A stretch of DNA of 64,000 bases from Takakia lepidozioides (Eukaryota > Plantae > Bryophyta), in contig CM060731.1 of NCBI GenBank assembly GCA_030704615.1, forward strand, positions 18,724,001 to 18,788,000, written 5' to 3'. Numbering within the stretch: position 1 is the stretch's first letter; each line of letters starts with the position of its first letter. Made by a program: the position numbers and the translations under genes. Below the pieces are notes generated by a model that was not told the origin of the DNA, searched no databases, and saw only the letters and a program-made list of their open reading frames with translations. Shown piece by piece: positions 406-60,630 of this stretch.

Positions 406-1073
406 TGTCAAGGACGAGAACATGACTGAACACAAACAAGAGATCAGACTAGAGGTACAAGACTAAACAAGAAGTCAAGGTCGGCGTGGCCGAATGCATG
501 GTGGGTAAACATGAATCAAGATGATCTTTATAACAATGGACAAGAGTACAAGATAATAGAACTCGACTCGAATACGAGAATGCTGGAAACTGGACTGGGG
601 TACCAGATACTAGAAACTGGACTGGGGTACCAGATACTAGAAACTGGACTAAGACGCAGATGTATTTGCTTGCATTTGGCCTGAAGGCGGACGGAGGCCG
701 CCAACATCCACCACCTCCGCAATTGTGCTTCAAGCTAGACTGGAGTACTGGGACTGGGAACAAGAGTAGTTTGAACTTGTGTTGGCGAGACTGAAGAGTG
801 TCCAGTCTCGCTCCTATATATACTGGCTACTAGGAGGTTCCCTAAGAGGCTTCCCCAAAGGAGGTTTCTTGATGGAGAAGTTTCCTCCAAAGGAAGCTTC
901 TTGAGTAGTTTCCCAAGTTACTCTCGGTAATTTGATAAATTCTCGGTAACTTGGTAACTAATGGTAACTTATGATAAATCATATGGTGTATCATGGTAAC
1001 TTTCGGTAACATGATAACTTGATAACTTCTGGTATTTACTCCTGGTAAGTTCCTCTGGGCTATGTCCCTGACA
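406..1073 (-). mobile_element. 5' LTR of the chromovirus element
   Basis: TGTCA...TGACA termini, TATATATA at 815-822, internal 27-bp tandem repeat (about 585-650), followed by a PBS-like 11-mer (393-403) and gag. Confidence 0.8.
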
Positions 1074-1605: not shown

Positions 1606-1988
1606 GGCTTGGGGAGGGTTTAAAATTTTGGCATATGTTGTTTTATTTTTTATTTTTATTTTTTAATCTACAAAAAAAACATGCTAAACTTGTTCCCTAT
1701 ATCATGGAAGGAAGTCAGTGTAGTAGGGGATGTGTGTTGTGAGCATACAGTTGCATTAGTTTTGTATTTTCCTTTCACTATAACATATTCACCAACAGTC
1801 ACTAGCTCAGTGGGTTAAGTGCACTAAGTGCCACCCAGATGATTATGGGGTCAAATCTTGCTACTGACGGGTGTGGTATACTCTTCTCCTAAGTTCCTGG
1901 GTGGTCTCCCATTTCTACGCCTCCATGGCGGGGTTAGTGTGAAAGAGGTTATTTTCTCCTCTCACTACAATTAAGGGGCCTGATTTGT

Positions 1989-4819
1989 ACTAGAGAAAGG
2001 GCTGGGTAGGGCCGATTCTGCCCTGTAAGCGGCCCTTGGGCGAGCCCTATGGCCGCGCACATGGCCGAATCGGCCCTACACGACCCTTTCACTGGCATTA
2101 AAAGTTGGTAGGGCGTATTCGTACGTATTATACTGGATTCTACTATTTCCATCTTGCTCACTTCTACGGTGGTTTCATTGTTGTTGCGTGTAGTTGCTAC
2201 GTGTAAGTAGTTGTTGCGTTGATGTTATGTATTTCTGCTTCGTGATGGAGAGCCCGTGGCGTGGAGTTCTAGGAAATATTTCCAATGTGCCTCAGACGAC
2301 ATCAGGTGGTAATCTGAAGAAAGCGCGTCTATATGCTGCAGATTCGCAAGTGCCGAATTCATCTTTTTCAGATCCTGTTGCACAAAAAAATGACGACGAA
2401 GAAGATGAGCTCGATTTGGCTTTTTCTACGTACCAGTCTGATACAGGAGTTGCTTCTTACGACGATCCAGCTTTTGAAGATATGTTCAGTGTTGTCGATA
2501 ATGGATTTGTTGATGCAGATGGTAATTCAGTTCCTGTAAGTCAAGACATTCTTGATTTCAGTTGGTGGCAATGAAGGCATTCTCAGTCACCCTGCAATGC
2601 CACATTCCAATCAAACAATACTGAAATGGGAATTTGTGATCTTGATGCTGAACCGGATTGGTTAACAAATGGCACTCACGCTTTCAGCGCCGCTGCTGAA
2701 AATATTTTCATGCAAGAACCGATCAATGATGGCGTTCAGAATGCCGATTCTGCTAGTGCTTCAAGCGCGGAGACAATGGCAAAAGAATTCGACCTACTCC
2801 GACGTGGATTTCGGCAGCTTGACAAAGAAGAGGTCGAGGAATTGAAGAAGGGAGGGCCACGAAAATCACTGTATATGGAGCGCTGGGGGAGGAACCGGTT
2901 TGGAGACTGGAGGAAGGTCACCGGTGGTCTTTGCATGGACTCAATTGAAGAAATGTTTGTGCATCGCCTGCCGGAACTTGTGGAGATGCTTTCTCAGTTT
3001 ATGTTGGAGGTGCAACGCAAAGACGGGAAACTTTATCCCGGTGAAACCCTGGTTACACTATTGCGCGCTATTGGACGGATTATTAGGGGGAAATTGGAGG
3101 CCGATTCTGTCAGGACTAGTGAAGTGGCAGAGAAGTTCGTGATCATCGACGATCCTCGTTTTAAAAAAATGTGCATATCTTGCTTAATTGCTGTGAAGAG
3201 GTCTGTGAGAGCGGGAATAGGCCGTAAGAGAAAAATTACCTCTCCTCTTACCTACGAGATGGGACAGCAAATATTAGTGTTGCCAATGATGTGCAGAACT
3301 GACAGAAGGGGATGTGTGCTGCGTGTAGCATATTACGTGATACACAATTTCTGTGTACGTGCACAAACTGAATTGTACAACATAATGGATTGTGATTTTT
3401 CCATTTGCCAGGACAATATCAATGGGAAGCATGTCAGGTTCGACGAGAGGGATACGAAGAATCACTTGTAAAGTTGATTTGCTGCACTGCCAGCCAGAAA
3501 AAATGAGGCGATCAGTAACTTGTAATCATCCAAATCTCGTTGAGACCTTCGAGACATATATGTCTCATTGGCCGAAGTGGAATGAAAAGGATCTTGATCC
3601 GCCTCATCCTTTTTTTCTGCGAGCAATTAATGATAATCTCAACCTCACAGAGCCTGACGTCTGGTACGCAAAGAAAAGAGTGGGTGTAAAGATGATCGCA
3701 AAATGGCTGAAAATGATGGTAGCTGCTCTTCCTGGGGCGCATGATGGTAACTATACCAACAAGAGTGCACGGGTGACTACTATATGTCGATTTAATGCAA
3801 TGGGAGTTCCTCCAGAACTGGGGATGAGAATGACAGGCCACACCTCTAGGGAGGGTTACATGCGTTATGACATAGATCACGACGGAATAATCATGCGTGC
3901 GCTCCAAAATGTTGCTTCTGCAGTGCCAGGTACTGGTGGAGATGTGTCGTGGGAGGCAGCACTAAAATATGAAAAAGATCGTTACAAGAAGCTTCAGGGA
4001 TTTGCTATAACCGATGGCTCATCAACTAGTGCACCTGAATGTCTGGATTCGGTTTCTGGTGATCACTTGGCGAATGTGCCATCGTCGGTTTCTGCATCGA
4101 AGGAAGTTTGCGCTTCGAAGATATCTGCAGCATTGGCCGATTCTGTTGGAGTATCGAATTCTAAGGCCCTTGTTGTTCGTGCTCCTAATGAGCTCTCGCG
4201 CTTGAGTGATGATGATTTTTGGGAGGACAAGGGGGTTCTCAATGAGGTGAGTGAAATGATGCGCTCTCATGGAGCTCTGCGTCCAGGACCTACTTACAAT
4301 GTGTCGAACACTCGCACGATTGGAAGTACTATCTTTCAAGGGAATTTGACGAATTGCACCATTCAGTTGACTGTGCCGGATGCAGCTACTGCAGCTTCGA
4401 TTCTTTCTGGCGCTACGGGAGCTCCAAGTGATCCTGGTTCTGCGTAGTTTTAGATTCGGATTCACATTGAATCGATCATGCAAATCATTCTTGTTAGCAC
4501 TAGTGCTCCATTGATGCTGGATCCCGGTAGTTTGTAGATTAGATACATTTTTACAGCAATAATCAACCAGGAGCAGATTCACATTGAATCAATTTTGTAC
4601 AAAATTTCTCATTGAATTTCTGCGCTGCGTGCTTGCTTTCTCCGCCATTTTCTAAATTGAAACCGTAGCTGGATGGAGAAGCGACGTATGTCTCCCCGTA
4701 TGAGAATTATATGGTGTATTTATACGGTGCAGATTCTGTGGCAGAATCGGCAGTAGTGGCCGATTCTGCACACCAATTACGCCGGGAAAGGGCCCGAATA
4801 CGCCCTACCTGCTTTTAAC
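1989..4819 (+). mobile_element. Tyrosine-recombinase DNA transposon (Crypton/DUF3504-like), copy 1
   Basis: Boundaries set by the empty site at 47592-47634 and by the internal inverted copy of the joined ends (2067-2121). Encodes a YR; no RT or gag seen. Confidence 0.85.
2245..4447 (+). pseudogene. DUF3504-like tyrosine recombinase with one in-frame stop (2572-2574) and one frameshift (about 3467-3470)
   Basis: Catalytic motifs VRAQTEL (R), TKNH (K), TNKSAR (K-x-x-R), TGHTS (H), YMRY (Y), plus PFFLRA and WY..KRVG typical of DUF3504/CryptonA. Removing TTGT restores NHKVDL as in copy 2. Confidence 0.8.
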
Positions 4820-4853
4820 GTGCGCTGTCGCTCCCAGGTGTTTCCCTTTAGAA

Positions 4854-4857
<4 letters not shown>

Positions 4858-4889
<32 letters not shown>
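4858..4889. repeat. (TA)n microsatellite
   Basis: Direct inspection. Confidence 0.95.
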
Positions 4890-5192: not shown

Positions 5193-8100
5193 ATGCAGGG
5201 GAATCAGCACCGGGTCACTTTCTCTCTTCCTCCTGAGGGAGAATACTTCCAGGAAAAAGCGGAGATCGGTCCAGATGAGAGGAATCTGCCTCACAGAAAG
5301 CGGAGCTTCACACAGTTGCTGATGGAAAACCCTAAAGATGCAGATTCCATGGCCTTAGATGAGATGGACGCAACGTATGTTGATTAAATTCCTGCATGAT
5401 CTCTGATACCTTTGTCATTTCCAATTGAAATTTTCTAGGTTGGTGTATTGATATTCGTTCTATCAGTAGTTCTGTTATTGCATATGGCGTCGGGAGGATG
5501 CATCGTGCAAACTTGTAGGGGGTAGAAATTTTTAATGCATAGCAAGTAGAGGCTAACGTTTGAAATGAACACGAGCAAGTGGAATTGCCATTATGATAAA
5601 ATTGAGAGGGAAAACAGAGACGACTCCGGCCAGCGAATATACCGAAATTTTATTTGGAGTTCTGCTTTCAATGCAGGGATGATGATGGGGAGAGCGTTGA
5701 GCTTGAGGAAGATAATTGTGACGGGGATTCCATTCACGAAGAGTTAGAGCAGAGTGAGGCAGAGGGATTGGGAGGCAGCGAGAGAGAAGAGGAGGACGAG
5801 AGACACCATGAAGGAGACGCGGAGGTGGACGTGGAGGGAGATGATTATGAGGAGTACGAGCTCTTGTTCGAGGGGGAGATGGATCCCTTGACGTTTGCAG
5901 AGGAGGATGAAAGTGGAAAGCTGCCTTACGAGCAGTTCCAGCGGCTGGAATACGAGGCACTTGCTGCACGCAAGCGGAAAGCATTGGCCGCACAATCGTA
6001 AGTTTCTTTCTTATCCAAATTTTCTGTACCTTCCTTTATGCTGCACTCCTTAGGCATGATGTTGTGTGTGTGAGAGAGGAGGGAAGAAGAAAGAAAGAAA
6101 GAAAGAAAAACTACACAATGTCGGAGGGTCCCAGTGAGAGATAGAAGTAAAGAAAGAATTAACTTTATGACATCCTGAGTCCCCTGAGGGCTCATGGGAC
6201 AAAGTGGAAAGATAAGAACTGCATCTGAGGGAAGACAAAGTGACTTCTCTCAGCTCATCTGAAACACCAGGGTTTTAGGATAAGGGGTTGGATGGAGTCT
6301 GTTTGTATGTCTGATGGTAATGGAGTGACTTGTGTACACTGCTGTTGCTTCTCAATTGTGGGAGTACTTACAGTTTAAATAATGGCATGCCACTTCTTCA
6401 ATACATCAATACCATCATTTCAGGAAATGACCTCTCACATGGCAGAAAAAATATTCAAAGCTCTGGGTATTGTATTGGCACGGTCTGATCTCCTGGTTCC
6501 TTTCTTCTTTCTGTTAGGGCAGAGAGTGCACAGGCAAAGAAGGCCAAGCAGCAAGATGTATTTGGGGCAAGTGTGGATGACATCTGGAATGCTGCAGGCT
6601 TTGGATCTAATCGCCGGCGCCGAAGAGAGGTCCGTGAATCTTACGAGGGAAGAAAGAAGAAAGAAATAATCTTTATAATGACCACACACCTGAGAGAGAG
6701 AGAATGTCGTCATAAGATGTTGGTTGCTGTAGTCTTGTGGCCATAGACCCCACGCCCAGTTTGGGCTGAACAATGTGGAATATGAACTCTCCTGGATGCT
6801 GTTGTCGAATTTCAGCCAACCAGTCTGTATGAGACTCCACTCAATATTAGCACAGTGATTACCGACAGCTGTTGGCACTCCCGACAAATGGAATTGAGTA
6901 TTGATGCTTGTACTGCTGTCGATTGAATACCATGAGGTTGCTGCTGTAGCTCACTGGCTGGTGTGGACTATGTGCCAGTCAAAAGAGTTCAAGAGAAAAG
7001 TGCAGGAAAGAGGAAGAGATTCTTGATTCCACAGAAGCTCAAAAGCGCAGAAAGAGAGATGGAGAGATTGCCATGTTTAGTCAATCAGCTCCTTTCTTGC
7101 CATGGTCATTTGTATTTGATGGGCTCACGATTGTCTGGCATCCTGCTTCATTGAAGTTGATGGACTCCTTCTGTTTGGCAGCCAAAGAAGAGAGGCAGAA
7201 AGAAACTTCCTCCAGGTGCGTCAAGACTGACACCTGAGGTTACCAGGAAACTTGGGGAAGCAAATCTTCTGTATGCCAGCGGCCGATTTGATGAGGTGCA
7301 CCTTGAGTTTCATATGCCTTAAACTTATACACAGTTAGAGAATGTACTCATAGATGACGTTTGCAATGCCCTGTTGCTTGCCATAGACCCTGTGCCTAGT
7401 TTGGGCGAAAGAGAGATTGTACTCATAAGACATTGTTTGCAGTAGCCTTGTGGCCATTGACCCCGCGCCCAGTTTGAGCGGGAACAAAAGGGACAGAACC
7501 TACCTCTGTCAGGGGCTGACGTTGGTAGTAAGACTTACCTTCATATATAGAATTAATCCGGGTTTTCCAGATATCCTCTAGAAATCCCTTCACACAAGCA
7601 TCAATCTGCTGTGTGTGATTTGCCCAAAAACTAGGCCTCAGGAGGGCCTGGGCTTTTGGCTCAGCCTCGAGACTTTCAAAGTTGGTAAACAGGGGTACAG
7701 GCACAATTCCCTTGATAGATTTGAAGAGAGCGTCTCTTTGGTGAGAGAACCCCGGACAGTGTATCAGAAAATGAATACTGTCTTCAGATTGCCCACACAA
7801 CGGGCAATTGCACTCTCCCTTTCCTCTCTGCTTCTGTTTGCTGTTCAAAGGTAGGCTTCCTGCCCTGAGTTTAAATTTCAGTCTAGTGCCGAGAGTGGGT
7901 AGACCCTTGAGGTCATCCAAGATGTCCTCCCTCATGTCACTGACTGGAAACAAGTTCAGGGAAGTTTTCTGCCTAACTTCATTTTCATCAGACAATCTCA
8001 TGGCAACAGACATGGCTTTGGACACTACAGCCTCTAAGTCAGATTGGACATATGTTGCAGCTGACCCCACCATCTGACCTTGAATTCATCTCGTTGGGAG

Positions 8101-11100
8101 CTTAAGGACGGAATGCCAAACTCACCCCGAACAGCCACATTGGCTGTTTTGGAGCATGCTGACATACACTCCTTAAGCACCTCCACTTGAATGGATTCTA
8201 GAGACTTAGCCTGGTTGGAGTTATGATGTTGATCAAGTTCTTTTGTGTAGTCCTATGTGCAAAATAAAAAAATTCATCCTACATATGATAATCTTGTGCC
8301 ACCTACATTCTATATAAGGCTCTTACTTATGGTACATTGCAGGCACTGGAGCTACTAAAGGAGGTGGTACGGATAGCTCCAAATGTGGCAGATTCATACC
8401 ACACACTGGGCCTCTTGTATGATGCCAAGGGTGACCGCAAGAAGGCTCTTAACTTCTACATGATTGCCGCCCATCTCACACCCAAGGATGTTGTGCTATG
8501 GAAACGCTTGGCTTCCTGGTCAATGTAATATGTTTTCCTGACTTTGCGCTTCCACTCTACATTGGTTTGTTGAGGAACATTCTATTCTTTCTATATGATG
8601 TGTAAAAATGTGAAGCTTGCACAGATTGATAGTGACGTGGACTATGACTGGTTCAGGGAACAAGGAAATTCAGGACAGGTGATATATTGCTTGACAAAAG
8701 CAATAAAAGCAGATCCCACTGATGAGGATGCCAAGTGGGACCGCGCCTCTCTGTATGCAGAGCTACAGGACTATCAAAAGGCTGCAGAGTCTTTTGAGCA
8801 AATCCTAACACTGCGTCCCAGTGATGTTGAGGTGTGCAAAATGGTTGCCAAGGTAGGGGCTTATATCTCTTTTTCACTCCCTCAATTCTAGATTGGGGTG
8901 CCAAGTCCTAAACAGTGAATTTGTTTGACAACTGGACATATGCATGCCACCAAAATCACCTCAACTGATGCTGGAAACTTGAAACCCTTTGCAAGTTTAC
9001 TGGACATCTCAAAAAGTTTGGGTGTTGTTGTGTGTCCAATCAGATGCAACACAAGGACGGGCAGTGTGAACGGGCCACACAGGTGCTGGAAAGATTGATT
9101 GATGAGCATCCAAGGGAGGCGGATTTGACAGCTGTCAACCTTCTAGCAGAGCTGCATATGGATAACGGTGCCTTTGTGGCAGCAATTTCCCGGATTGAGG
9201 GGGCGCGTGTTCTCTATTGTGCTGACCAACACCTTCCCCTTGACCTTGCTGTGAAAGCTGGCATTTGCTATGCGTATATGGGGAATTTGGATGATGCTGA
9301 GGTGGCTTCCTTTCTATCCTGTTCCAATTATACTGACCAGAATGCAATAGGTGCTCCATCAACTTTGAATTGATTGAGTCGGATAGCAGTTTGACTCTAT
9401 CTTTTAGCCTTCAGACATGAAAGAAAGTGTGCCACTTCAAAATCAGTTGGCTATGAGACTGAGTTTGGTGGTACATTTGTATCAGTGTTTTAGGAATGTA
9501 ACAGCATAAATGAGCTTGGCTAAAGACACAGTTAGAAGGCTCAGGGTTAGGCCTTTGGATAGTAAGCAGCGAACACCAAGGGGTATTCTCAGAGCAAAGG
9601 GGAATCCTCGGGGAAACCTGATGTGAGTCTCCAGGGGGAAGCCACAGGCCTGATCTTGAGAAGCAAGATTGAGGGCATAGCATGCTGTGAAGTAGAGTAC
9701 TCCTGGGCAAGTGCAAGAAGAGGATTCAAGGTTACATGGTTGACTTGCTCATACATTGATGTAGGGTCTGGTTTTACTATATGAAGACTGCGCCATCCTA
9801 AGTTCTCAAACACATTAAGTTGTTTAATTTGAAATGACTTTGGCAGAGAAATTTTGACGGGCTAAGTAAGGAGAGTGTGGATGAAATTGCGGATTTGGTG
9901 CTGGAAGTGGGTGATGCATACCTGGCGCTTGGAGAACACAGGCACGCCCTCCGCTTTTATCAGAAGCTTGATGGCAACAAGGCCTTTGACAATGTAGATC
10001 CCATTCTCTCTCTTTTTTCCTTCAACTGACTCCAGTCCATCCAGACTGGCAAGCACAGTCAACGTTTACACCTCTTTTCCTTTAAGAAGAGAGCTTGAGA
10101 GTCTTCTGGGTCTCATGAACACCACCTGTTAGCTTCACGCCTTGAGGCCTTAGGTGATTAGTGGATATATCTCAATGCCGGATGTCCTGAAACTGTCACT
10201 GCTGCTTGTTGTTTCACAGCACTCTACATCACTCTTGATATTCTGTATATGCAGTCATTCATCAGTCATATGTCTGTAAACCTGTTGCGCAAACAGTTGA
10301 AATTGAGGGGAAAGCAAAAGAGAGACTAGTTCTACTTGTTTTCGATGATGACAAGTAATGTGGCAAGCCTTTTTACCTGCACATGATCCCTCTTCTTTAT
10401 CCACCTGCCTTTTTAGGGTGTCGCTCTGTTTCACTCCAGCAGACAGGATTGTGAAAACATGTATCAAAGGGGTAGAGTTTCAATTGTGATGCCAGAGGGA
10501 TGTGTAACTATCTAAGAATCTCTTCTGGTACACATGGAGGGCAGGTACTGTTGTGGCTAAAGGTGGCTCAATGTTACATTTCAATAAAGGCAGATGCAGA
10601 TGCGATTTGTGTTTACCTTCAGGGTATGCCCCCCATCTACTTCACTGGCTCTCTCTCTCTCCCTTTAGGGAACGGCATGAGTACATTCTCTGTCTTGTTT
10701 CAAAACTCGATGCAGAGCCTAAGCCCTGGCCCTGTTCTAATAGCTGGGCAGCTCACACACAGTAGATTGATGCTTGTGTGTAGGGCTTTCTAGAGGAAAT
10801 CTGGAAAGCCTGAACCAATTGCATAAACCAAGGTGAGTCCCACTACTGGTGTGAGCCCCTCACCAAGGTTTGTTCAGCCCAAACTGGGCCGCAGAGTCCA
10901 TGGCGGCTACAGCCACAAGGCTCCAGTCTGTAGGCTATTGCTGTGTGGGCACTTCCCTTTGTTTAGAAGGTAAGCTTCACTACTGAAGCATTGTCCTACT
11001 TCCTCCTTCCAGGAAACGAATTTTGATGTGGCATGGCATTGATGCTGGGGTTGGCACAGTGGTGAAGGAGATGCCCGAACATGTTGATGCACGTCTTACT

Positions 11101-18982: not shown

Positions 18983-21900
18983 CTAGTAGATGTAGGCATA
19001 CAGTCCGGTCACAATTCCCTTGACTAGTTTGATTAATCGCTTGGTGAAATAGAACATAACCCCAAGACACACAGATCCTCCAATGGTAAGCGCGCTGAAT
19101 GTTAAAGCTCGATGATTCCATGTCCCCGGCAGCACAGCAATGCTGGCCGCTGCAAAAGCGACTAAAATACACCCAATAGAAGCGAAAAGTGCACATGCTG
19201 CAGCAAGAATGGTCCTTTCCGTGAGTTGCACCGACTGCAGCAATGGCTCATGTTTGAGTGGAAGTGAGGGAATCACAATCAACATGATACATGCCACAGC
19301 AAGACAAAATGACAAACTATCACAAAATATGAAGATTTCCACTAGAATATTTTTGTCGTCCAAAGACACATATCACCGTAGGTAGTATAGCCGAGGGGTG
19401 GTTGCATTGGGCCCAGATAAGACGTTGTTGCCACAAGTCCCGCTGTCAGTGATATGGCAGTTGCAGCAGAATTGAGATTACTCTGGATGTTGGTGGTTGT
19501 AGTAGTCACCATCTCGTACCACCATGACAGATACTCCTCCGAGGCACAAGATCCAGGCTCTGGAGGTGAGTTGTCTTTGCAAAGCTGCGACATGCTTAAG
19601 CCCGCTCGCAACAATAGGATGATGCATCTTTTTTTCCCACCGTATCCTTCGCAAAAAATTTCTCTCTTTTGCAATTCCGAAAAACTTGAGAAGTCAAAGA
19701 TACAACGCAGGTCCGAGTCCATCAACAATCCATCCGCTGCGAGATGGAGAGCCGTGGAACCAAACTTTGAATCGTCCCTTAATGCATGAAATTTAGAGAG
19801 TTCCTTGTCCAAGAACAAGCGTACACCTTTAGCATTTCCCGTAGCAGCAAGTATATGCAACGTTGGGAAAGGATTCTCGCATTCTGTGTTATGTTTCCCG
19901 CTATCCTTTATCCTGTAACACCGAACTTTCAATACATCATGAATGCCATAGATTTTTAGATATGGCCAAGCCACAAACGTGACTTGGTGGAGTACAGACT
20001 ACAGACCTGTTTTTCAGGTGAACACACTGCCATCAATAAGAAAAACCTAAGCCCTGTTCGTTGAGTATTTGAAAACCCCAGTTCCATAAAAAACTTGTTT
20101 CAAAGCAGAAGGGCCATCTGGTTCTAACGTTCTAACATCTTTAAGATAGCTGCAGTTAGGGTTGGACCAATGAATCTATCTCCATTTCAAGGAAAAAGGT
20201 TCCTCTAGTTTAGGATGGGACTTAGAAATGGAAGGGAAAAAGCCACGATCTCTCAGCCCATTGAATCCAAAATAGTACTAATATTTTTTCCCTGCAATCA
20301 AATTCATGCATTATGATATGTAACACATACCTCGAGTAGCAGTTTCAATATATCCGAATCTCCAGTCATGGCAGCCAACTGCAGAGGTGTCCATTCTTCA
20401 GACTCCATGTATTCTTTACTCCCGAGTTGCATCCGACGAGCCATCAACTTGTTTCGATCGATCCTGTTCGACTTCCAAAGGAGCTTAACACATTTGCAAT
20501 GTTTATCCATGATAGCCAAGTGTAAGGCTCTCGCCTCATATTCTTTAAATTTTTCATCCTCCATCAAATCTCTTAAGTGCTTGACATGGGTGAATGGAGC
20601 GAAGATTACGTTCAAATCTGTTCTCTTATCCACTATGAGGTATTGCAGAGCATCAAAAGCTCCGCAGGCAGCAGCTAGATGCAATGTTGTCCGTCCCAGG
20701 GCGTCAAGTGCATTCACACACTCTTTGTCCCCACCTGGATTTATTAATTTGAGGAGTTGATCGACCACCGAGGAGTTGCCACCGCCACTACCACCACCCA
20801 CTTCACCACCACCAACTTCATTCACACCTTCTTTGTCCTTGGTGGTCGATTGGAGGACTTGATCGACCACCAAGGAGTTACCACCACCACCCACTTCATT
20901 CACACCTTCTTTGTCCTTGCTGGTCGACTTGGGGACTTGATCGACCAACGAGGAGTTGCCTTCCGAGTTCACTTCACCACCACCCACTTCATTCACACCT
21001 TCTTTGTCCTTGCTGGTCGACTTGGGGACTTGATCGACCAATGAGGAGTTGCCTTCCGAGTTCATTTCACCACCACCCACTTCCTTCACACCTTCTTTGT
21101 CCTTGCTGGTCGACTTGGGGACTTGATCGACCAACGAGGAGTCACCAACCAATGTTGAATTCACTTCACCGACCACCGACGAGTTACCTGAGGACTTGAC
21201 CTGTCTGACCAACGAGGGGTTGACGGCGATGTGCAATGGAGTTCTGCCGAAGTCATCTTGCAATTTGAAAAGACGCTGTAAAACGGAAGAAGGTCTACGC
21301 TCGCATTCCTCAGTTATACACCTGCATTTACTCTTGCCTTTACACTTGCATTTACACTGGCAGCCCTTCCTTTTACACTTGCATTCCTCCATCATATCTT
21401 GTCGCAGGAGGCGAGCAGTGTAGTTTTTGGACGAACGTAGGATATGAAAGGTGTAAAGATCATCTTTCATTATACCTTGCCGGTTTTAATCGTCTAGCAT
21501 GCTCAAAGACGCTCGCATATAATCGTCTAACTCGTGTAAGACTTTCTGTTGAATAATCCGAAGCTCCTCATCATCATTTGTCGTTTCTAATGCCGTAGCA
21601 CGGTCGGGTGGTACATCGGTAGGGCAGGCGGCCTTCATCAGGCTTCGATAACGCCTTGTTTCCCAATTACGAGGGCCATAGCGAGTGCGGTCTCATGACA
21701 TGAACCATCCTCTGCCCAAAGTAGGTCCTCAAGGGTAATCAGATCATCGGAAACCTCGTGCACAGGTTTTTTCCTGGGAAAAATGCCTAGCGCTTGGTCG
21801 ACAAGGTCTTTGCAACCGCTGTGTGCAGTACAGTTCGCCCTCCCCAACCTCTTTGTTTTAGTAGCAGCCGCGGGTCCGAATTCAGGTCCAAGTCCATGTC

Positions 21901-37064: not shown

Positions 37065-40000
37065 GCCAAGCAAGCAGCATAGAACGGCTTTGGCAGGAGT
37101 TCATTTCAGATCCTTTGCAGTGGTGGGACAATAGGTCTGACAAGGTGAGACCATTGCTATGATGAACCAATCATTTTTCATTCCTAAGGTGAAAGGGACG
37201 TTGCTCTGTTTCCTGATTGAATCTGTCTGATGCATTATCTTGGTAGAAAAGAAAGGTTTCAGTTGTTCTATTGATGACATTCTTTTCTGTCACAGCTGTC
37301 ACAGTGGTTCTCATTATTGGATCAGTCGATGGGTAATCCACGCCAGCATTGATGTTGGTATTTTCAAAGTTGTGGCCCATTCTTGAAGCGATGCCTGTGG
37401 AGCCTTGGTGGTGGTAAACGAGGTTGGGGTTGAACCTATGGCTGCTCAGCTGCCCAACTCATTCTTTACACAGAGAAGTCCAAGATCACCAGATTTCAGA
37501 CATAAGCGGACAAATGAGGTCCTTTGGATTGAGGGTTGGTCGAACTCTCCTTGGGTGACAGCAGAGCTGGCTGCCATGATAGAAGGTCAACTGCAATCTA
37601 GTAATTTTTTTATTATTGGAATGGATCATGGAGGTGGAGCTCGAGCTTTTAACAGGTATTGTTCTGATGATTATTCACATGTTCAAATTCAAACAGATAG
37701 AATAGGAACACTACCATCTCAGAGTAGATGGCTGAATATTTTTGGAGCACTGTCAATGTGTAGCCAGAAATCTGCCCTTGTAGAAAGTCCTTCTGTTGCA
37801 GTATGGAGGAACTTGGATATGGATTATATCAGTGGGACAGTCTCTAAGTAAGAGCTTTGAGTCATGCAGGTCACAGTTGAATGAGGTACATTTGTTTGTT
37901 GGACATCAGACAGGCGGCAGCGGTATCACTTCAACTCCTTTTGAAAGGGGACCAAAAGAGGGAGTCGACAAGAACTCTACTGGCCTTTGTGAGGATGTGA
38001 GGACACTCTGTAGGGCAGGAAAACTGAAAGAGGCGCTGTATATTTTGAACCAATCAGGCATTCAAGCAGACTTCAATAGCTATGTGTGTCTGTTGCAGGG
38101 GTGTACCAGGACAAAGAATGTAGCTCAGGGAAAGCAGGTGCATGCCCACATAATCCAGAGTGGATTCAAGCCAAATGTCTTTCTACTAAACATCCTTATC
38201 AACATGTATGCCAAGTGTGGGAGGCTGGTGGATGCACGCCAAGTTTTTGACAAAATGCCTGAAAGATCTTTGTTTACGTGGACTATAATGATAGCAGGAT
38301 ATGCAAAGCATAGCCGGGGTAGGGAGGCTTTGAAGCTGTATGAGCAAATGCAATGGGAAAGAGTGATGCCTGACAGGATCATTTGCATTTGCCTTCTCAA
38401 TGTGTGTTCCAGCCTAGGAGCCCTGGAAAAGGGCAAAGAAGTTCATGATGCCATAAACAAAGCTGGAATCGTATCATCTATTGACTTGGAGACTACCCTC
38501 GCTGACATGTATGCCAAATGCGGGAGCATGAAGGATGCCTGTCAAGTGTTCAACAATATGGCTGAACGAAATGTGGTGTCGTGGAATGTCATGGTTGCAG
38601 GATATGCCCGAAATGGCTGTGGTAGGGAGGCTTTGGAGTTCTATGAGCAAATGCAACAGGAAAGGGTGACTCCCAACAGGATCACTTTCACTTGCGTTCT
38701 TAAAGCATGTGCTAGTCTTCGTGCCTTGGGAAAGGGAAGAGAGGTCCTTGATGACATCAACAAAAGTGGAATTGTGTTGGATATCATATTGGAGACTGCA
38801 ATTGTTGACATGTATGCTAAATGTGGAAATATGAAGGACGCACATCAAGTGTTTGAAAATATGGCTAAACGAAATGTGGTCTCATGGAATACCATAATTG
38901 CAGGATATGCTCACCATGGGAGTGGCAGGGATGCTCTTGAGATGTATGAGCAAATGGGACGGGAAGGGGTGACACCTGACAGGGTCACATTCATTTGTGT
39001 TCTCAATGCTTGTGCAAGCCTAGGAGCCCTGAAAATGGGGAAGGAGGTCCATGCTGACATCAAAAAAGCTGGAATCGCCTCAGATGTTAATTTGGAGACT
39101 GCCCTTGTTGACATGTACGCGAAATGTGGGACCATGAAGGATGCACGTCATGTATTCAAGCATATGGCTCACCTGGATATCGTGTCATGGAATGCCATGA
39201 TTGCAGGATATTCTCAGAATGGGAGTGGCAGGGAGGCTTTTGAGATCTACTACCAAATGCAACGTGAAGGGGTGATGCCCAACAAGGTCACCTTCATTTG
39301 CTTTCTCAATGCATGTGTCAGCCTAAGAGCCCTGGATAAGGGCAAAGAGGTCCATGCTGACATAATCAAAGCGGGAATTGCATCAACTAATTTGGAGACT
39401 TCCCTGGTTGACATGTATGCCAAATGTGGAAGCATAAAGGATGCACGTAAAGTGTTTGATAATATGACTGTACGAGATGTAGTCTCATGGAACACCATGA
39501 TAGCAGGATATGCCCAGCATGGATGTGGTAGGGAGGCTATTGAAATTTATGAACAAATGCAAGGGGAAGGGATGACACCCGATACGGTCACATTTACTAC
39601 TGTTCTGAATGCTTGTGCCAGCTTAGGAGCCCTTGAGAAGGGTAAAGAGGTTCATGCTGACTTCATCAAATCTGGATGTGGGTCAGATGTTAATTTGGAC
39701 ACTGCCCTCGCTGACATGTACGCCAAATGTGGGAGCATGAAGGATGCCTGTCAGGTATTTGATAATATGGCTGAACGAAATGTGGTCTCATGGAATGCCA
39801 TGATCACAGGATATTCTCAACTTGGATGTGATAGGGAGGCTTTGGAGATTTATGAGCAAATGCAACAGGAAGGGATGACACCTGACATAGTCACATACAT
39901 TTGCATTCTCAATGCATGTGCCAGCCTAGGAGTCCTGCGAAAGGGCAAAGATGTACATGCTGACATTGTGAAAGTTGGAATTGTGTCACATATGCACATG

Positions 40001-41008
40001 GAGACTGCTCTTGTTGACATGTATGCTAAATGTGGGAGCATGAAGGATGCGCGGCAAGTATTCGGCAGTATGGATGAACGAGATGTGGTTTCATGGAGTG
40101 CCATGATTGCAGGATGTGCCCAGCATGGGCATGGTAGAGAGGCCCAGCAACTTTTTGAACAAATGCAACAGGAAGGCTTGAAGCCAAACAGCATCACCTT
40201 TTTATCTCTTCTCTCTGCCTGCAGTCATGCAGGCCTAGTGGAAGAAGGCCATCAATACTTTCATTCTTTGAGTCAAGATCATGGCCTCACTCCTACAATT
40301 AAGCATTTTGGTTGCATGGTGGACATTCTTGGTCGTGGAGGGCGTTTAGACGAGGCAGAGAACTTCATCAACAGAATGCCTATTCCACCAGATGGCAGGG
40401 TGTGGAGACCCTTGCTTGGGGCCTGCAGAATGCATGGTGATGTGGAGATAGCTGAACGCACAGCCAATGCCATCCTCAAGAGTGATCCACTGCACCCTGC
40501 AGCTTATGTGCTCCTTTCAGACATCTATGCTGCAGTTGGCAGGTGGGAAGACAGAGCTATGATTAGGAAAATGATGGAGGACAGAGGTGTCAGAAACGAG
40601 CAAGGTCATAGCTGCATTGAAGTTGGAAACCAGTTGCATACATTCCTTGTAGATGACAAATTGCATCCACAAATTGAGGAAATCCATGCTGAGCTGAGGA
40701 GATTGGCTGGGCAGTTGAAGGTAGCCGGGTATGTGCCTGACACAAGCTTTGTATGGCATGATTTGGAGGAGGAGCAAAAGCAACTTTTTCTCTGGCATCA
40801 TAGTGAGAAGCTAGCAATCGCCTTTGGGCTCATCAGCACGCCAGCTGGGATGCCTATCCATGTCATCAAGAACCATAGGGTGTGTGGGGACTGCCACACT
40901 GCCACCAAGTTCATATCGAAGATTGTGGGGCGACCAGTTGTTGTGCGGGATGCCAATCGTTTTCATCACTTTCAAGACGGGGTTTGTTCTTGTGCAGATT
41001 ACTGGTGA
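37065..41008 (+). CDS. PLS-class PPR protein with E1/E2/DYW deaminase domain (organellar C-to-U editing factor) and N-terminal OSB-type PDF motif; upstream transit-peptide exons (about 36198-36973) uncertain
   Basis: More than 20 P/L/S repeats (DMYAKCG, VVSWNAMIAGY), HSEKLA...CGDCH...HHF...CSCADYW. Exon 37065-37144 splices to 37474. A 4-bp duplication near 37846-37853 shifts the frame before the PPR tract. Confidence 0.93.
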
Positions 41009-47574: not shown

Positions 47575-47636
47575 GTTCTCCTCTCTCTATCAAGGGGCCT
47601 GATTTGTGAGCTGTTGCTCCCAGGTGTTTCCCTTTC
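47575..47636 (+). repeat. SINE-like tail copy that is the empty target site of YR element 1
   Basis: AAGGGGCCTGATTTGTGAGCTGTTGCTCCCAGGTGTTTCCCTT joins the sequences at 1973-1988 and 4822-4848. Confidence 0.8.
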
Positions 47637-57252: not shown

Positions 57253-59431
57253 TCATACTGTTGGAGCCCACCTCCAGCATGTCATGTGAGATGGGTGCAA
57301 CTTCTTCTGCCATGATAAGTATGCAACTGCAAAAATTACATGACCTTGATCGAAAATGTTGGAGAAAAAAGAACAAAACCTGCGCTCAAAATAATGATGG
57401 GAAAAAACCACCTCTGACCATAACGCGATGGAACGGTCGGGGCCGGGCCATTCTGCCCCCTGAGCTACCCAGCCGTGAATTTTGGCGGGGCAGAATGGCC
57501 CGGCCCTGACCGTTCCATAGCACGTGATACCCAATCTCTCACACGTCATCCCAATGAGCGCCTAAAACCAGCAGCCAAACCAATTTTGGCAGCTTATTTC
57601 ATGGCTTAATTTGATGATAGGCTATTTTTGGCCAAAGAGAAGAGAGAGAGAGAGAAGACTCCGGCCGAAGTCGACGTATTTGCTATGTGGCCACTTCTTT
57701 TTGGCATAATGGCCTTCACCGGGACTTTAAGATGCTATTTTATCTATAATGAGAAGCAATGGTTCTTTTTACTATGCTCTCTTGGTTCTTCCCTCTCTTG
57801 CTCAGCTTGGGCATATTTGCTTCATGGCCAATTGGGATTTTGTTTTTTTCCCTCACCTAATAAAGTGGAACCAGGGCCACTGTCCCCTATTCACTAAAGT
57901 AAAAATATTTAAAAATAAATAAATAAAATCTCTGATATCCGGGCCACACATGACATGTGCATTGCCTCAACGCAGTTCCCATTACGGGGGCCTTTGGTAC
58001 GCGACAGTGTCAAGTCATTCCTAGCTCCTACATTGCTGGCGGGGTGTCCACACGACATAGTTTTCTAACGTAGGAGAAACTAGGGTATGTCAAGATATTT
58101 TACCACTAGTGTGAAACTAGCTAAGAAATAGTTAATTTTGATATATTGACATTTGGGATTGATCCAAGTGTCAATCCAGGGACCAATGTATGTTTGGGTA
58201 CCGGACGGGGTTATTTTCACGGCAGAGCGCGGTGGGCTCATCTTTCTCGAGTTGAGCCTCACTGCGTCTAGCTATAGCGCCGCAGTGTGGATTCCCCATG
58301 GCGTGGCATGCACTTGGCTCGACTTAATATATGAGTGATATTTTTTATGTACAAGTGTGTGAGTTTGAGAGAGCTTGTGTGCTTCTATCCTTCTTCTTTA
58401 TCACTCGAGAAAGATCAGCTCGACTCTGTGAGTGCCAGGTTCGAGTTAGTTGTAGCACTTATGTTTCCAGATGAGAAACTACCCAGCTTAGAGTGCAGGG
58501 ACCCGTGCATGAGCCTATCCAAAGCGGATAGGATGCAAAGGCGAACATGTTGCAGGTTTGCAATGGAAAGAGAGACGGTCAGCCTGTGTTGAAGAGCGGC
58601 GTTGTATAGCTCAACGCTACGGCAACCAAGTTTGGGCTTCTAGTGTGAAGCGGAGGAGATGCTGGCCATAGAGAGCCATTGATTGCTGACCCGAAAGCAC
58701 TTGCTTTGGGGCCCATGAACTGCATGTATGATTATGGTGTGGAAGAATAGAAGACCAAGCTAGAGGGCTGGTTCTTCTCTTGTTCAAATCAGTGCACTTG
58801 TGAAGCATGTGCTGAGTTGGAGTTTCAATCTGAAACTCAGCAGTGTAAGGGCTCTTAGAGTGGCAAGAGCGGGGCTTGAAGGGCAGCAGCGAGGCGCCCT
58901 AAAGCCAGGGAATACGCATGAGAAACCTAGGCACACCAAGGTTGTAAAGGTGTGTATTTTCAGATTTGTTTTTGTGAGCTTTACGAAGAAAGACAAATTT
59001 TTGGGCAATGGATAGTTTGTTTGTTGAGTTTGGGGTGCTTCTGGCGGGCCGTGAGAGCTCAAGAGAGCATGACATCAGATCTGGGGGCTTCGCGGAAGCC
59101 ATAGCTGGTCGGCAGCAGATGCAGAGGCAAACCCCAGCTCGGGGAGAGCTCGGGAACGTGTGGGAACGTCCTGGAAGCGATCGGGAACGCATGGGAACTT
59201 GTGGGGAGTTCCAGGGAATGCAGGGAACAGTGGCTGTGACCGTGGTCGTGGCCGTGATGGGCCGTGGGGGTGGTATCACGAGATACCACGAGCCCAGGCC
59301 GTGACTGTTGACCGTGACCGTGGGATATCACGGGGTAGCTCGTGGGCAGCGTATGCCTAGGGCGGGCCGTGAGAAGTCGTGGTGTTGAGGGCCACAGAAG
59401 GCCGCGGACACGCTGAGTGAGAAGGAAAAAA

Positions 59432-59439
<8 letters not shown>

Positions 59440-59496
<57 letters not shown>
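59440..59496. repeat. (TA)n microsatellite
   Basis: Direct inspection. Confidence 0.95.
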
Positions 59497-59499
<3 letters not shown>

Positions 59500-60630
59500 T
59501 CATTCATGTCGTGGGACGTTGATGGGGAGGCTGGGCTCTGAAAAACAACAATTTTGAGCTAGCTGATCTGGCAGAAAAAGTCAGAATTGCCTCCCTGTTG
59601 CGTTTTAACAAAGGGGGTTACCTCCCTGCAGGTAATCTTTTGGGTTTTTCTTAACTAGGGGGAGACCAACCTGCAGGTAATTCCTTTGGACAAAATGTTG
59701 TTGGGGCCTATATGTACCTCCATTTGCTCCACTTTTGAACCTTCAGCGAATGGCGTGGTTTCCTAAGGTGGTTTCATTCTGAGGAATGGCTGGTGGATAT
59801 AAGGAGGCACTGGCGGACCATGTGGAGGCTTGCATGGGGCCTTGGAGGCCAAGTTTCATGAGCTCGTGGAGGGCGGTTTGAGGAGTGTCTACATGATGCT
59901 CCCCGTGGTCATGCAAGTGAGAGAAGAGAGGAAAAAAGAGGGTGTTGGGATGAGAGTGTGCTGGGGATAGACATTGCTTTAGCTTCCATTCCTCATAGCT
60001 TTCCACCTTCTCTGTAGGCCGAGACCTTTCCGTAGGTGGAGGCAAGAGTGAGTCCGGGTTTGGGCTGGGTTGCAGGAGCGACACTGTGGAGAGAGATTTT
60101 TGGTGTGGGGGAGTTGTTGTCTTCATTTCTTGTGTTTGGATCCCCTCCACACCTGCATGCTTGATTGTGCGCCATGCTAGTTTTGTGTGGGCACTTGTTT
60201 TTATAGGTGGTTGGCTCGGGCTTGATCGTCGATCCGACCCTAGAGCATGCTGTCTATGGTGAGGCTGGGTTAATGACCAGTCAGACCATCTTTGTTTCTC
60301 CTTGGTGAGGTTGGAGGTGATGACTAGCCGACCATAGGAATGCCTGCGGTGGATGCAGGTGCAGGTGCAGGTTATGTTAGGAACCTAGTATTCCAAACCA
60401 TAAGCCGCATCAGATTCTCTACCCGGTTACCTTGTAGAGAGGGGGCTAGGGACATATTCATGACCGGTTGAGTGTCAATTTGTCAATACGGAGGTGCTAC
60501 CAGTTGCTGGGGAAAGTGCCGGTACGAGCACTAGCGATACTAGTGGGTACACGAGACGAGGTGTGCGGTTTAGGCCACCTTCACCTCCTGTGTCTTCTAC
60601 GGAAGGTTCTGATTCGGATTGTGAATCAGG

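Follow-up and report, generated by a model that had tools for sequence, protein, structure and literature searches.

Of all classes of eukaryotic DNA transposon, Cryptons are understood least, and to our knowledge the literature offers neither a transposition assay for them nor an intermediate or a defined recombination site. Reviews treat them as featureless, which also makes them hard to annotate, and in published descriptions Cryptons have no terminal repeats and no conserved feature of structure (PMC3212892 section 8; PMC13465315; PMC12130899). Among bacterial systems, integron attC recombines as a folded single strand, and replication resolves the product (PMC2727003, PMC3458562).

The locus described here lies in a 64-kb window (the whole stretch of DNA that was analysed) of Takakia lepidozioides. 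It holds a Crypton-type DNA transposon of a non-seed land plant, in a copy that is no longer active, in which an inverted copy of the joined element ends lies beside the 5' end. The closest known analogue of this layout is the DIRS1 internal complementary region (ICR), and its functional analogues are integron attC and CTX attP. No description of the layout for Cryptons was found in the searchable literature, in agreement with an earlier, sequence-only reading of the window.

Element, insertion site and recombinase gene

The element has inserted into a very high-copy SINE-like repeat, which it interrupts (Table 1); a tRNA scan of this repeat was negative. Uninterrupted copies of the host repeat span the insertion point, so both element ends were fixed independently of the inverted repeats. 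Elsewhere in the window, a second copy of the host repeat has the flanks 1954-1988 and 4820-4849 joined without interruption, and over 60 contigs from this organism run through the empty site without a break (..GATTTGT/GAGCTGTCGCTCCC.., with the slash at the insertion point). Target duplication is absent, and the empty site shows GT alone as shared sequence. In the relative L001, a 10-nt similarity of the flanks (GGGGTTTC..GT on both sides) was considered as a target duplication and rejected as low-complexity DNA, with no repeat in the other copies.

Table 1. Positions of the element, its arms, gene and motifs, and of the host repeat, in the 64-kb window
Feature	Positions	Strand	Basis or remark
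Crypton-type element	1989-4819	+	ends set by uninterrupted host-repeat copies
Host SINE-like repeat, left part	1790..1988	+	contig depth 20,000-50,000 in the same organism; consensus empty site ..GATTTGT/GAGCTG..
Left GT, copy of the crossover dinucleotide	1987-1988	+	last two bases of the left host-repeat part
Arm A, 5' terminal arm	1989..2042	+	starts ACTAGAGAAAGGG; GCCGATTCTG motif at 2011-2020
Arm A', inverted copy of A	2043..2096	+	41/54 complementary; folding z; compensatory changes
B', inverted 3'-end copy adjoining A'	2097..2121	+	22/25 to the reverse complement of 4795-4819
Disrupted tyrosine-recombinase gene (intact length about 700 aa)	2245..4447	+	translations, Pfam, fold of relatives, motifs
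Three GCCGATTCTG-type motifs, 3' subterminal	4729-4738, 4742-4751, 4759-4768 (cluster 4729..4768)	+, -, +	motif scan
B, 3' terminal arm	4795..4819	+	ends CCTGCTTTTAAC; end fixed by the empty site
Host repeat, right part	4820..4850	+	starts with the right GT copy (4820-4821)
Paralogous empty site	47576..47635	+	uninterrupted host-repeat copy across the insertion point; blastn and pairwise alignment

The only gene encodes a Cre-like tyrosine recombinase (YR). Two insertions disrupt it: 77 nt from a high-copy repeat (2560-2636), which contain an in-frame stop at position 2572, and the four nucleotides TTGT at 3466-3469, which shift the frame. By contig comparison, both insertions are missing from other copies in the same organism. 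An intron at 2538-2594, which would have held the stop, was ruled out, since 2560-2636 is that repeat fragment. Pfam matches of the gene in the window to QRICH1 and DUF3504 were weak and below threshold (E 0.025 and 0.09), and a profile of the family reached DUF3504- and QRICH1-bearing proteins above threshold (E 1e-31 to 1e-10). For an intact relative, P0163 (843 aa), sequence searches against PDB and Pfam were blank, and the recombinase was identified solely by fold search: its AF2 model (pLDDT 77) had Cre as best PDB match, over both domains (E 7e-8, TM 0.70), followed by Tn1549 Int, IntI and QRICH1. Alignment recovered catalytic-type motifs (ER / NKSxR / TGH..Y), in which Lys replaces the first (box-I) His. 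A word-indexed protein search with the C-terminal half returned no proteins beyond two already found.

No RT domain was detected in Pfam scans of pieces of the window, of the relatives and of 10 long homologues. The element is 2.8 kb long and its relatives 2.8-3.6 kb, each filled by a single ORF of 700-843 aa that leaves no space for RT. Fold, catalytic motifs and Pfam scans together agree with the earlier description of an RT-less tyrosine-recombinase DNA element. That description had allowed for an internally deleted DIRS or Ngaro element; a recent deletion of this kind is contradicted by the relatives, which all fall in the same size range and are YR-only.

Layout and conservation of the internal junction copy

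Along the element, A is followed by A', B', the body and B. The match counts first read from the letters were exactly reproduced, with 24/30 for 1989-2018 against the reverse complement of 2067-2096 (fixed-register chance 4e-10) and 22/25 for 4795-4819 against that of 2097-2121 (fixed-register chance 6e-11); the whole A arm matches the reverse complement of A' at 41/54 (chance 6e-15). A repeat search found the same pairs, with arms of 50 nt (80%) and 24 nt (92%). A and A' make up a hairpin or cruciform with 54-nt arms and its centre at 2042/2043; its folding energy is -37.7/-38.3 kcal/mol (z relative to shuffles, -6.9/-7.7). The two termini do not form terminal inverted repeats with each other. 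The common core that had been proposed for A and B holds in the relatives at the level of a short GATTC-type motif, which is all that the two ends share.

Taken together, A' and B' are the joined ends in reverse complement, in effect a junction copy like an ICR, as the first reading had it and as also seen in relatives; a circle joining B to A would therefore complete an imperfect palindrome, B-A-c-A'-B'. The arms of the joined palindrome are about 80-90 nt long, and the crossover point lies ~54-61 nt from the centre, in one arm only. The predicted circle junction is ...CTTTTAAC / (GT)ACTAGAG... for the element in the window and ...GATTAC(G) / GTATTGGG... for the L013-type family of relatives. 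GT precedes ACTAGAG in all five relatives that have the 5' end. Should this GT form part of the circle junction, the internal copy would be colinear with the junction and 2 nt shorter (a TA bulge). Of the gap-free copy originally claimed, colinearity thus stands, and strict freedom from gaps applies only if the flanking GT lies outside the circle junction.

The same layout was found in four diverged relatives with both ends (L001, L003, L004 and L005), in a fifth, L006, which is cut in A', and in the distant L013-type family. This last family is recently active; it has an intact 843-aa ORF, its copies are 99.6-99.9% identical, and at least three distinct flanks were seen on each side. The abutment of A' and B' recurs in L001, L003, L004, L005, L006 and L013, with B' 25-32 nt long across the family, and two families with this layout have proteins that are only ~30% identical. 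The hosts are lycophytes, ferns, liverworts and mosses, all non-seed land plants. Hairpin and junction copy are absent from the Diphasiastrum loci L002 and L007 and from the JGI contig L017, but as fragments, decayed copies or truncated contigs these three are uninformative; L052 and L053 lack element ends and have the appearance of transcripts. A family-alignment search of metagenome contigs gave no related loci.

Compensatory changes between the ends and the internal site, which the sequence-only reading had proposed to look for across family members, were present: 23 of the 43 hairpin pairs carry compensatory double changes (four elements compared). The two arms within one element are 71-87% alike, the same arm between distant elements 43-57%. 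The palindrome runs without gaps through the junction in five elements of differing arm length, and the joined form has a folding energy of -46 to -88 kcal/mol. Since covariation keeps the pairing while the sequence drifts, the structure is under selection, and its conservation with compensating changes in distant relatives argues that the layout is a working part of how these elements move.

The covariation of the arms could also come from gene conversion between closely spaced inverted repeats, or from both arms binding one co-evolving protein. Gene conversion is common in palindromes, and would be the means by which inverted copies arising as a historical accident stayed alike with no function at all; palindromes are also unstable, and L005 has lost the centre of its hairpin. 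We nevertheless consider a functionless origin very improbable, as palindromes not under selection decay or are deleted, whereas here the exact geometry is kept in both of these diverged families with their differing arm lengths, A' adjoins B', and B ends at the element terminus.

Further GCCGATTCTG-type copies occur in the element at 2743, 3100 and 4136. Within the whole 64-kb window, eight of nine GCCGATTCTG matches fall inside the 2.8-kb element, with a chance expectation of three for the window. The motif in arm A lies 25-26 nt from the end in the element in the window, L001, L003 and L013, and relatives carry similar motif clusters. The 3' subterminal motifs are probably protein-binding sites.

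Possible roles of the internal copy

At least nine independent insertions were available, and in all of them the hairpin lies upstream of the ORF, the breakpoint is B/A, and an intact A'B' adjoins the 5' end region. The orientation of the asymmetric mismatches (+1 A.C in 4/4; +39/+40) is constant. The 5' GTA is fixed, and the 3' G-T-N is variable and target-derived. These observations bear on a proposal made from the sequence, in which the circle would carry two working inverted sites, like the FRT sites of the 2-micron plasmid. Such sites would allow inversion of the intervening segment, replication-coupled amplification or insertion via either site. Junction and internal copy are indeed inverted and similar to the degree given above for the two arms, but the internal site was used in none of the insertions (0/>=9, two families; P ~0.002 under equal use), the crossover nucleotides differ consistently between the two copies, and the asymmetric mismatches and loop are never flipped, either among lineages or in at least three recent copies from the active family. 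Neither the relatives nor these recent L013-type copies include a flipped hairpin or a copy with its body inverted. With the internal copy never serving as breakpoint and flipped isomers absent, a 2-micron-like pair is disfavoured, and we give it very little credence.

We prefer, as plausible and tentatively held, a reading by analogy with attC and CTX-phi attP, and in line with the self-splinted single strand of the sequence-only reading, in which the palindrome would be a strand-specific recombination site that acts in folded form. Within a single DNA strand, A would pair with A' and B with B', which would bring the two ends of the element next to each other along the uncut A'B' strand. The recombinase would cut flank/A and B/flank on that strand and exchange partners, yielding a closed single-stranded circle with the attachment site in its hairpin, together with a resealed donor strand. 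The circle would then insert by a single strand exchange beside a target G(T), and replication would finish the event. Such a site would explain the A'/B' abutment, the conserved mismatches adjacent to the crossover, the fixed 5' GTA with variable 3' G-T-N, and the missing target duplication.

Several results count against this folded-site reading. The element encodes no source of single-stranded DNA, and no tyrosine recombinase of eukaryotes is known to use folded single strands as its substrate. Assembled contigs of the organism showed neither a circular nor a single-stranded form of the element. The junction predicted for the active family (CGATTACG, 0-6 nt, TTGGGTAACGG) had 34 matches in metagenome contigs, one of them from a human-gut metagenome, all due to chance since in no case does the match continue into the element. 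The arm covariation, too, has the other possible sources named above. The two strands, top and bottom, have similar folding energies, with neither consistently better, and counts of G.T versus A.C mismatches favour one strand in L004 only; there is thus no signature of strand-specific folding in energies or mismatches, and these two comparisons by themselves tip the balance neither way.

The lack of strand bias in folding energy would suit an ordinary double-stranded circle recombining by canonical two-strand exchange at B/A, with A'B' as an uncleaved accessory or architectural site, or a cruciform, that assembles or regulates the synapse or sets directionality. A'B' would then bind extra recombinase subunits through the GATTCTG-type motifs, or extrude as a cruciform in the supercoiled circle. 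The recombinase is Cre-like, and all studied Cre-type enzymes act on duplex sites; the GCCGATTCTG motifs keep to set distances within both A and A' and form a cluster close to the 3' end, as arm-type binding sites do; and the internal copy departs from the junction exactly around the crossover, which fits a site competent for binding and incompetent for cleavage. On the other side, the covariation spans whole 80-nt arms, far past any motif, the 3' flank shows only a shared G(T) rather than the 6-8 bp overlap copy expected of homologous two-strand exchange, and the sites are 108-122 bp apart, a distance at which looping is sterically hard without bending factors. We regard the duplex explanation as a real possibility, if a somewhat doubtful one.

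Evidence from the genes and their introns bears on a route through RNA, in which the element would be copied into cDNA by an RT acting in trans and A'B' would be a splint restoring and joining the ends of linear single-stranded cDNA, as in the DIRS1 ICR. A left-end complement followed by a right-end complement is the logic of that ICR, a segment that DIRS-1 needs in order to retrotranspose; a junction trinucleotide is found in DIRS elements too, and DIRS-1 RT is able to work in trans (PMC7192593). Yet RT, RNase H, methyltransferase and gag are absent from every element despite protein divergence to ~30% identity, inverted LTRs are absent, and a transcript would need to span exactly the first to the last element base. 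A GT-AG intron of 169 nt is moreover kept in L006, and the ORFs of L003, P0003, P0008 and P0010 break at this one common position (after DPGV), where an RNA route would tend to remove the intron; the L006 exons were searched separately (P0002 and L006:1638-2333), and the joined protein was checked for an open frame only. We consider such a route highly improbable.

A broader reading, which we think unlikely, would make the inverted junction copy an ancestral requirement of Crypton and DIRS recombinases rather than an adaptation to reverse transcription: the enzymes would recombine a one-strand hairpin and move single-stranded circles, like integron cassettes and CTX-phi, and the DIRS1 ICR, which is essential for a step later than cDNA synthesis, would serve the same purpose. 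If true, this would be the first structure-specific single-strand transposition pathway of a tyrosine recombinase in eukaryotes.

The link between a DNA-only element and the DIRS1 ICR makes an old question testable, namely whether the junction copy is there for reverse transcription or for the recombinase. The finding supplies a precise, conserved and covarying cis structure for Cryptons, with ends at base level, and the near-identical multi-copy relative with an intact recombinase gene is ready for assay. A terminal hairpin followed by an inverted 3' end provides a search signature for plant Cryptons and their non-autonomous derivatives, and a recombinase that reads structure instead of sequence would be of interest as a tool.

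Comparison with known systems

Tn916 and Tn1549 form a recombinase-made circle whose junction has a short non-homologous coupling sequence, as predicted for the plant element, and the Tn1549 integrase is among the fold matches. Their junction is itself palindromic, since one end is an inverted repeat of the other, whereas A and B of the plant element share a short motif and the symmetry partner is the internal copy.

With attC and CTX-phi attP(+), the plant element shares an imperfect palindrome conserved by structure and not by sequence, a crossover in one arm only, integrated copies that keep the partner arm intact near one end, mismatched or unpaired bases at the crossover, and the lack of target duplication (PMC2727003, PMC3458562). 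Those systems are bacterial, rely on IntI or XerCD and have stems of ~25-60 nt against ~80 nt here, and it is by analogy with them that a folded single-strand substrate is suggested for the plant element.

DIRS1 likewise encodes a tyrosine recombinase and has an internal complement of the left terminus directly followed by that of the right terminus, so that circle junction and ICR are inverted copies; its junction di- or trinucleotide is likewise common with the target (PMC7192593). The plant element differs in that it lacks RT, RNase H, methyltransferase and gag, as well as inverted LTRs (the repeat search found no long inverted termini). Its junction copy lies beside the 5' end and forms a hairpin with that end, while the DIRS1 ICR is near the right LTR; a plant relative keeps an intron, and the recombinase is probably of Crypton/DUF3504 type.

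The plant element agrees with Cryptons (CryptonA / DUF3504-QRICH1-type; Goodwin 2003, Kojima & Jurka 2011, Glomhopper 2026), which are ~3 kb long with a two-domain tyrosine recombinase as sole gene, lack RT and terminal inverted repeats between the termini, and produce no real target duplication, with a common crossover sequence of 1-3 nt only; the profile of the plant recombinases reaches DUF3504/QRICH1 proteins, and QRICH1 is among their fold matches. The plant lineage is set apart by its non-seed land plant hosts, by the change of the box-I His to Lys (NKSxR) and, unlike Cryptons as described, by a conserved, covarying terminal hairpin with an inverted copy of the 3' end.

Element bounds, host repeat and recombinase gene

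The bounds of the Crypton-type element were set by comparing the empty with the filled site. In the window alignment, the flanks 1954-1988 and 4820-4849 adjoin each other in an uninterrupted copy of the host repeat (47576-47635), and in >60 contigs from public runs of the same organism the insertion point is uninterrupted, reading ..GATTTGT|GAGCTGTCGCTCCCAGG.., where the filled site reads ..GATTT GT|ACTAGAG ... CTTTTAAC|GT GCGCTG.... The element therefore occupies the interval in the table, with the target GT found at both sides. In contig X6 record 18 the match to the element begins at the same place after other upstream sequence. The host repeat reached a contig word depth of 20,000-50,000, no tRNA was found in it by ARAGORN, and many copies carry 3-nt indels around 1967-1970. 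At the relative locus L001, a target duplication was considered (flanks 5770-5786 and 8592-8604 share GGGGTTTC(TC)GT) and attributed to chance in GTTTC-rich low-complexity DNA.

Features of the window, with positions counted within it
Feature	Position	Strand	Description
27-nt tandem repeat	546-650		3.9 copies
Host repeat, insertion target	1790-1988 and 4820-4850; second copy ends at 47635		SINE-like, very high copy
Crypton-type element	1989-4819		inserted in host repeat
A	1989-2042		5' arm
A'	2043-2096		inverted copy of A
B'	2097-2121		inverted copy of B, adjoining A'
Tyrosine recombinase (YR) gene	2245-4447		single long frame, broken twice
B	4795-4819		3' arm
(TA)n microsatellite	4857-4889		directly 3' of element
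(TA)n microsatellite	~59423-59501		
ORF with ankyrin repeats	20304-21470	-	388 aa
PPR protein with E, E+ and DYW deaminase domains	37796-41008	+	intronless, 1070 aa

The PPR-DYW protein, an RNA-editing factor for organelles of a kind typical for land plants, confirms that the genome belongs to one. The recombinase frame is disrupted by a 77-nt piece of another very high-copy repeat with a stop inside (2560-2636; GA instead in other copies in the organism) and by a frameshifting TTGT (3466-3469; absent from those copies), so the window copy is a pseudogene, and the original protein measured about 700 aa. The repeat inserted at 2560-2636 has a depth of about 50,000 and its contigs run on as ACAACAAATATGAGGATTCGC... 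past 2635.

Pfam matches of the window gene to QRICH1 and DUF3504 were sub-threshold only. A family profile (alignment A1) run against 1.8 billion representatives recovered 498 relatives, the nearer being hypothetical proteins of Diphasiastrum, Selaginella, Adiantum, Marchantia, Riccia, Calypogeia and Ceratodon, all non-seed land plants, and the farther matching DUF3504 and QRICH1 above threshold. The structure of an intact relative (P0163, residues 170-700) was modelled with AlphaFold (pLDDT 77) and matched both domains of Cre recombinase (E 7e-8, TM 0.70), followed by Tn1549 integrase, XerA/XerH, integron integrase and QRICH1; judged by this model, the encoded enzyme is a Cre-like tyrosine recombinase. 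The recombinase alignment contains ER, NKSxR, TGH and a Tyr 9 residues past the TGH His, which we take to correspond to the R / (H->K)xxR / H(W) / Y set of Cre. Neither RT nor RNase H nor any further enzyme domain was detected in the elements, whose length leaves no space for one. The sequence-only reading of an RT-less tyrosine-recombinase element is upheld by the P0163 fold and the missing RT domain.

An RNA/cDNA route with RT supplied in trans appears very improbable, given that the relative locus L006 retains a 169-nt GT-AG intron (its removal opens a 707-codon frame; exons were taken separately in homology searches) and that the frame breaks at one shared position, after DPGV, in L003, P0003, P0008 and P0010.

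Two sets of recombinase-related proteins, P0028/P0166 (Marchantia polymorpha MARPO_0141s0031 and M. paleacea) and the P0039 cluster (Selaginella LOC9653486/LOC9657420), look like single-locus genes with isoforms and are possibly domesticated Crypton recombinases in liverworts and lycophytes; the Marchantia proteins are without the TGH histidine. At the P0017 locus of Adiantum capillus-veneris, a Replitron_HUH gene lies ~4.7 kb downstream of the Crypton-like gene. In P0022 the annotation fuses PPR repeats to a recombinase-like region, probably a gene-model artefact.

Hairpin and junction copy in two families

The inverted matches that had been reported from the sequence alone were reproduced exactly: 24/30 between 1989-2018 and the reverse complement of 2067-2096 (fixed-register chance 4e-10), and 22/25 between 4795-4819 and that of 2097-2121 (6e-11). 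The full arm A matches the reverse complement of A' at 41/54 (6e-15), and a repeat search recovered the same inverted pairs. Folded as single-stranded DNA, the hairpin of A, centre and A' reached -37.7 kcal/mol (top strand, z = -6.9) and -38.3 kcal/mol (bottom strand, z = -7.7), equalled by 0/200 shuffles.

Relatives of the window family are 48-76% identical to the window copy (DNA or protein). Both ends are present in L001, L003, L004 and L005, L006 being cut within A' by a contig end, and all share the termini flank-GT|ACTAGAGAA ... CTTT(T)AAC|G-flank. Their terminal hairpins have arms of 46-58 nt with 71-89% pairing, directly followed 3' by an inverted copy of the 3' end (24-32 nt, 92-96% paired).

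A distant family (L013 type) was found on nine JGI metagenome contigs, adjoining plant genes. Its protein matches the family profile at E 8.5e-42; identity is about 30% with its nearer relatives in ferns and 21-27% with the window family. A stretch of 3,643 bp carrying an intact 843-aa ORF is 99.6-99.9% identical among the contigs and has at least three different flanks per side, and the family has therefore been active recently. Its arms (A 872-931, A' 936-995; 60 nt) are 88% paired, and B' (996-1022) mirrors the last 29 nt with one indel. The A arm measures 54 nt in the window and L001 and 61-62 nt in L003, L004 and L013. The internal junction copy is thus kept in L001, L003, L004, L005, L006 and the distant family, and when B is placed before A the halves align gap-free through the junction in 5/5 complete elements. 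The junction-copy layout is a family character.

When all arms are aligned together, similarity between the two arms within an element is 71-87%, against only 43-57% for the same arm across distant elements. RNAalifold, run on the contiguous hairpins of four elements, predicted 43 pairs, and in 23 of them at least one element has changed both partners with pairing preserved; B and B' show the same pattern. The compensatory changes proposed as a check are therefore present, and the palindrome completed by end joining is shown to be under pairing-conserving selection. A functionless relic has very little probability, as the layout is kept in two distant families and the arms covary within elements.

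A second copy in the same organism (~96% identical; runs X1, X5 and X6) is without both gene disruptions and diverges upstream of 2084, 12 nt before the A'/B' boundary. The hairpin centre of L005 is deleted, with the same last 12 nt of A' kept; this shared remnant may reflect recurrent palindrome deletion. One contig of run X1 links 2066 back to 2010 via CTGTTT and may derive from a copy whose hairpin was rearranged or duplicated.

Breakpoints and candidate mechanisms

Every insertion seen (six in the window family plus one 5' junction known from reads, and three or more in the active family) breaks at B|A, the predicted circle junction, with the hairpin upstream of the ORF; the chance of this under equal use of both sites is about 0.002. 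Active-family insertions were counted by distinct flanks on one side only, because contigs L014 and L011, with identical 3' and different 5' flanks around the 3.6-kb element, are probably chimeric metagenome assemblies via the near-identical repeat. The internal copy does not serve as a second breakpoint. At position +1 the junction has A where the internal copy has G (4/4 elements), +3 and +6 are often mismatched, and +39/+40 differ between the two copies in constant orientation. These mismatches keep one orientation, so the 108-bp segment does not flip. Inversion via two inverted sites, as first suggested, was not borne out: a flipped segment was looked for, and mismatch orientation was constant in all elements compared. 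A 2-micron-like pair of active sites is accordingly most unlikely.

In the window family the 5' flank is GT in 5/5, A being the first element base, and the 3' flank starts with G in all six copies and with GT in four of them. The active family starts GTA; G is the last base common to its copies, with T next in 2/3 flanks. Should that G come from the target, the 3' flank would start with G in 9/9 and with GT in 6/9. A single strand exchange that tests homology over 1-3 nt would leave such junction nucleotides. The claim of a gap-free junction copy holds if GT belongs to the target only; if GT(A) lies in the circle junction, internal G would face junction GTA, with a 2-nt TA bulge beside the cut. 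Fold energies favour neither register.

By analogy with known folded-strand sites, we tentatively prefer a reading in which the joined ends would fold on one strand and the recombinase would act on that folded site. Such use of the palindrome would explain the pairing kept along entire arms, the exact A'/B' abutment, the crossover mismatch zone, junction nucleotides that are fixed on the left and variable on the right, and the lack of any duplicated overlap region. The main rival, a double-stranded circle in which A'B' would be an accessory site left uncut, or a cruciform, is possible though somewhat doubtful; it is favoured by the Cre-like fold, by the lack of a consistent strand bias in folding or mismatch types, and by motif arrays. 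Besides the termini, sequence is conserved in the (G)CCGATTCTG motif. Arm A has it at 25-26 nt from the 5' end, A' holds its mirror image, and further copies cluster in the last ~100 nt before the 3' end; 8/9 matches of the 64-kb window fall inside the element.

Comparison with described systems

Direct repeats of 4-6 bp are described for fungal Cryptons, and no terminal repeats of any kind for animal ones (Kojima & Jurka 2011, PMC3212892); a 2025 survey describes Cryptons as hard to classify, conserved structural features lacking (PMC12130899). Our full-text literature search (Crypton with internal complementary region (ICR), palindrome or hairpin; Repbase entries outside its scope) returned no description of this layout for Cryptons. 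Measured against the literature searched, the elements are Cryptons of a novel structural type from hosts that have been little explored, and with an intact, recently active relative at hand the experimental path is clear. The nearest described structure to the A'B' layout is the ICR of DIRS1, which is essential after cDNA synthesis (PMC7192593). The folded single-strand sites attC and CTX attP have the properties listed above for the folded-strand reading, among them a structure-kept palindrome, a mismatched crossover and no duplicated overlap (PMC2727003, PMC3458562).
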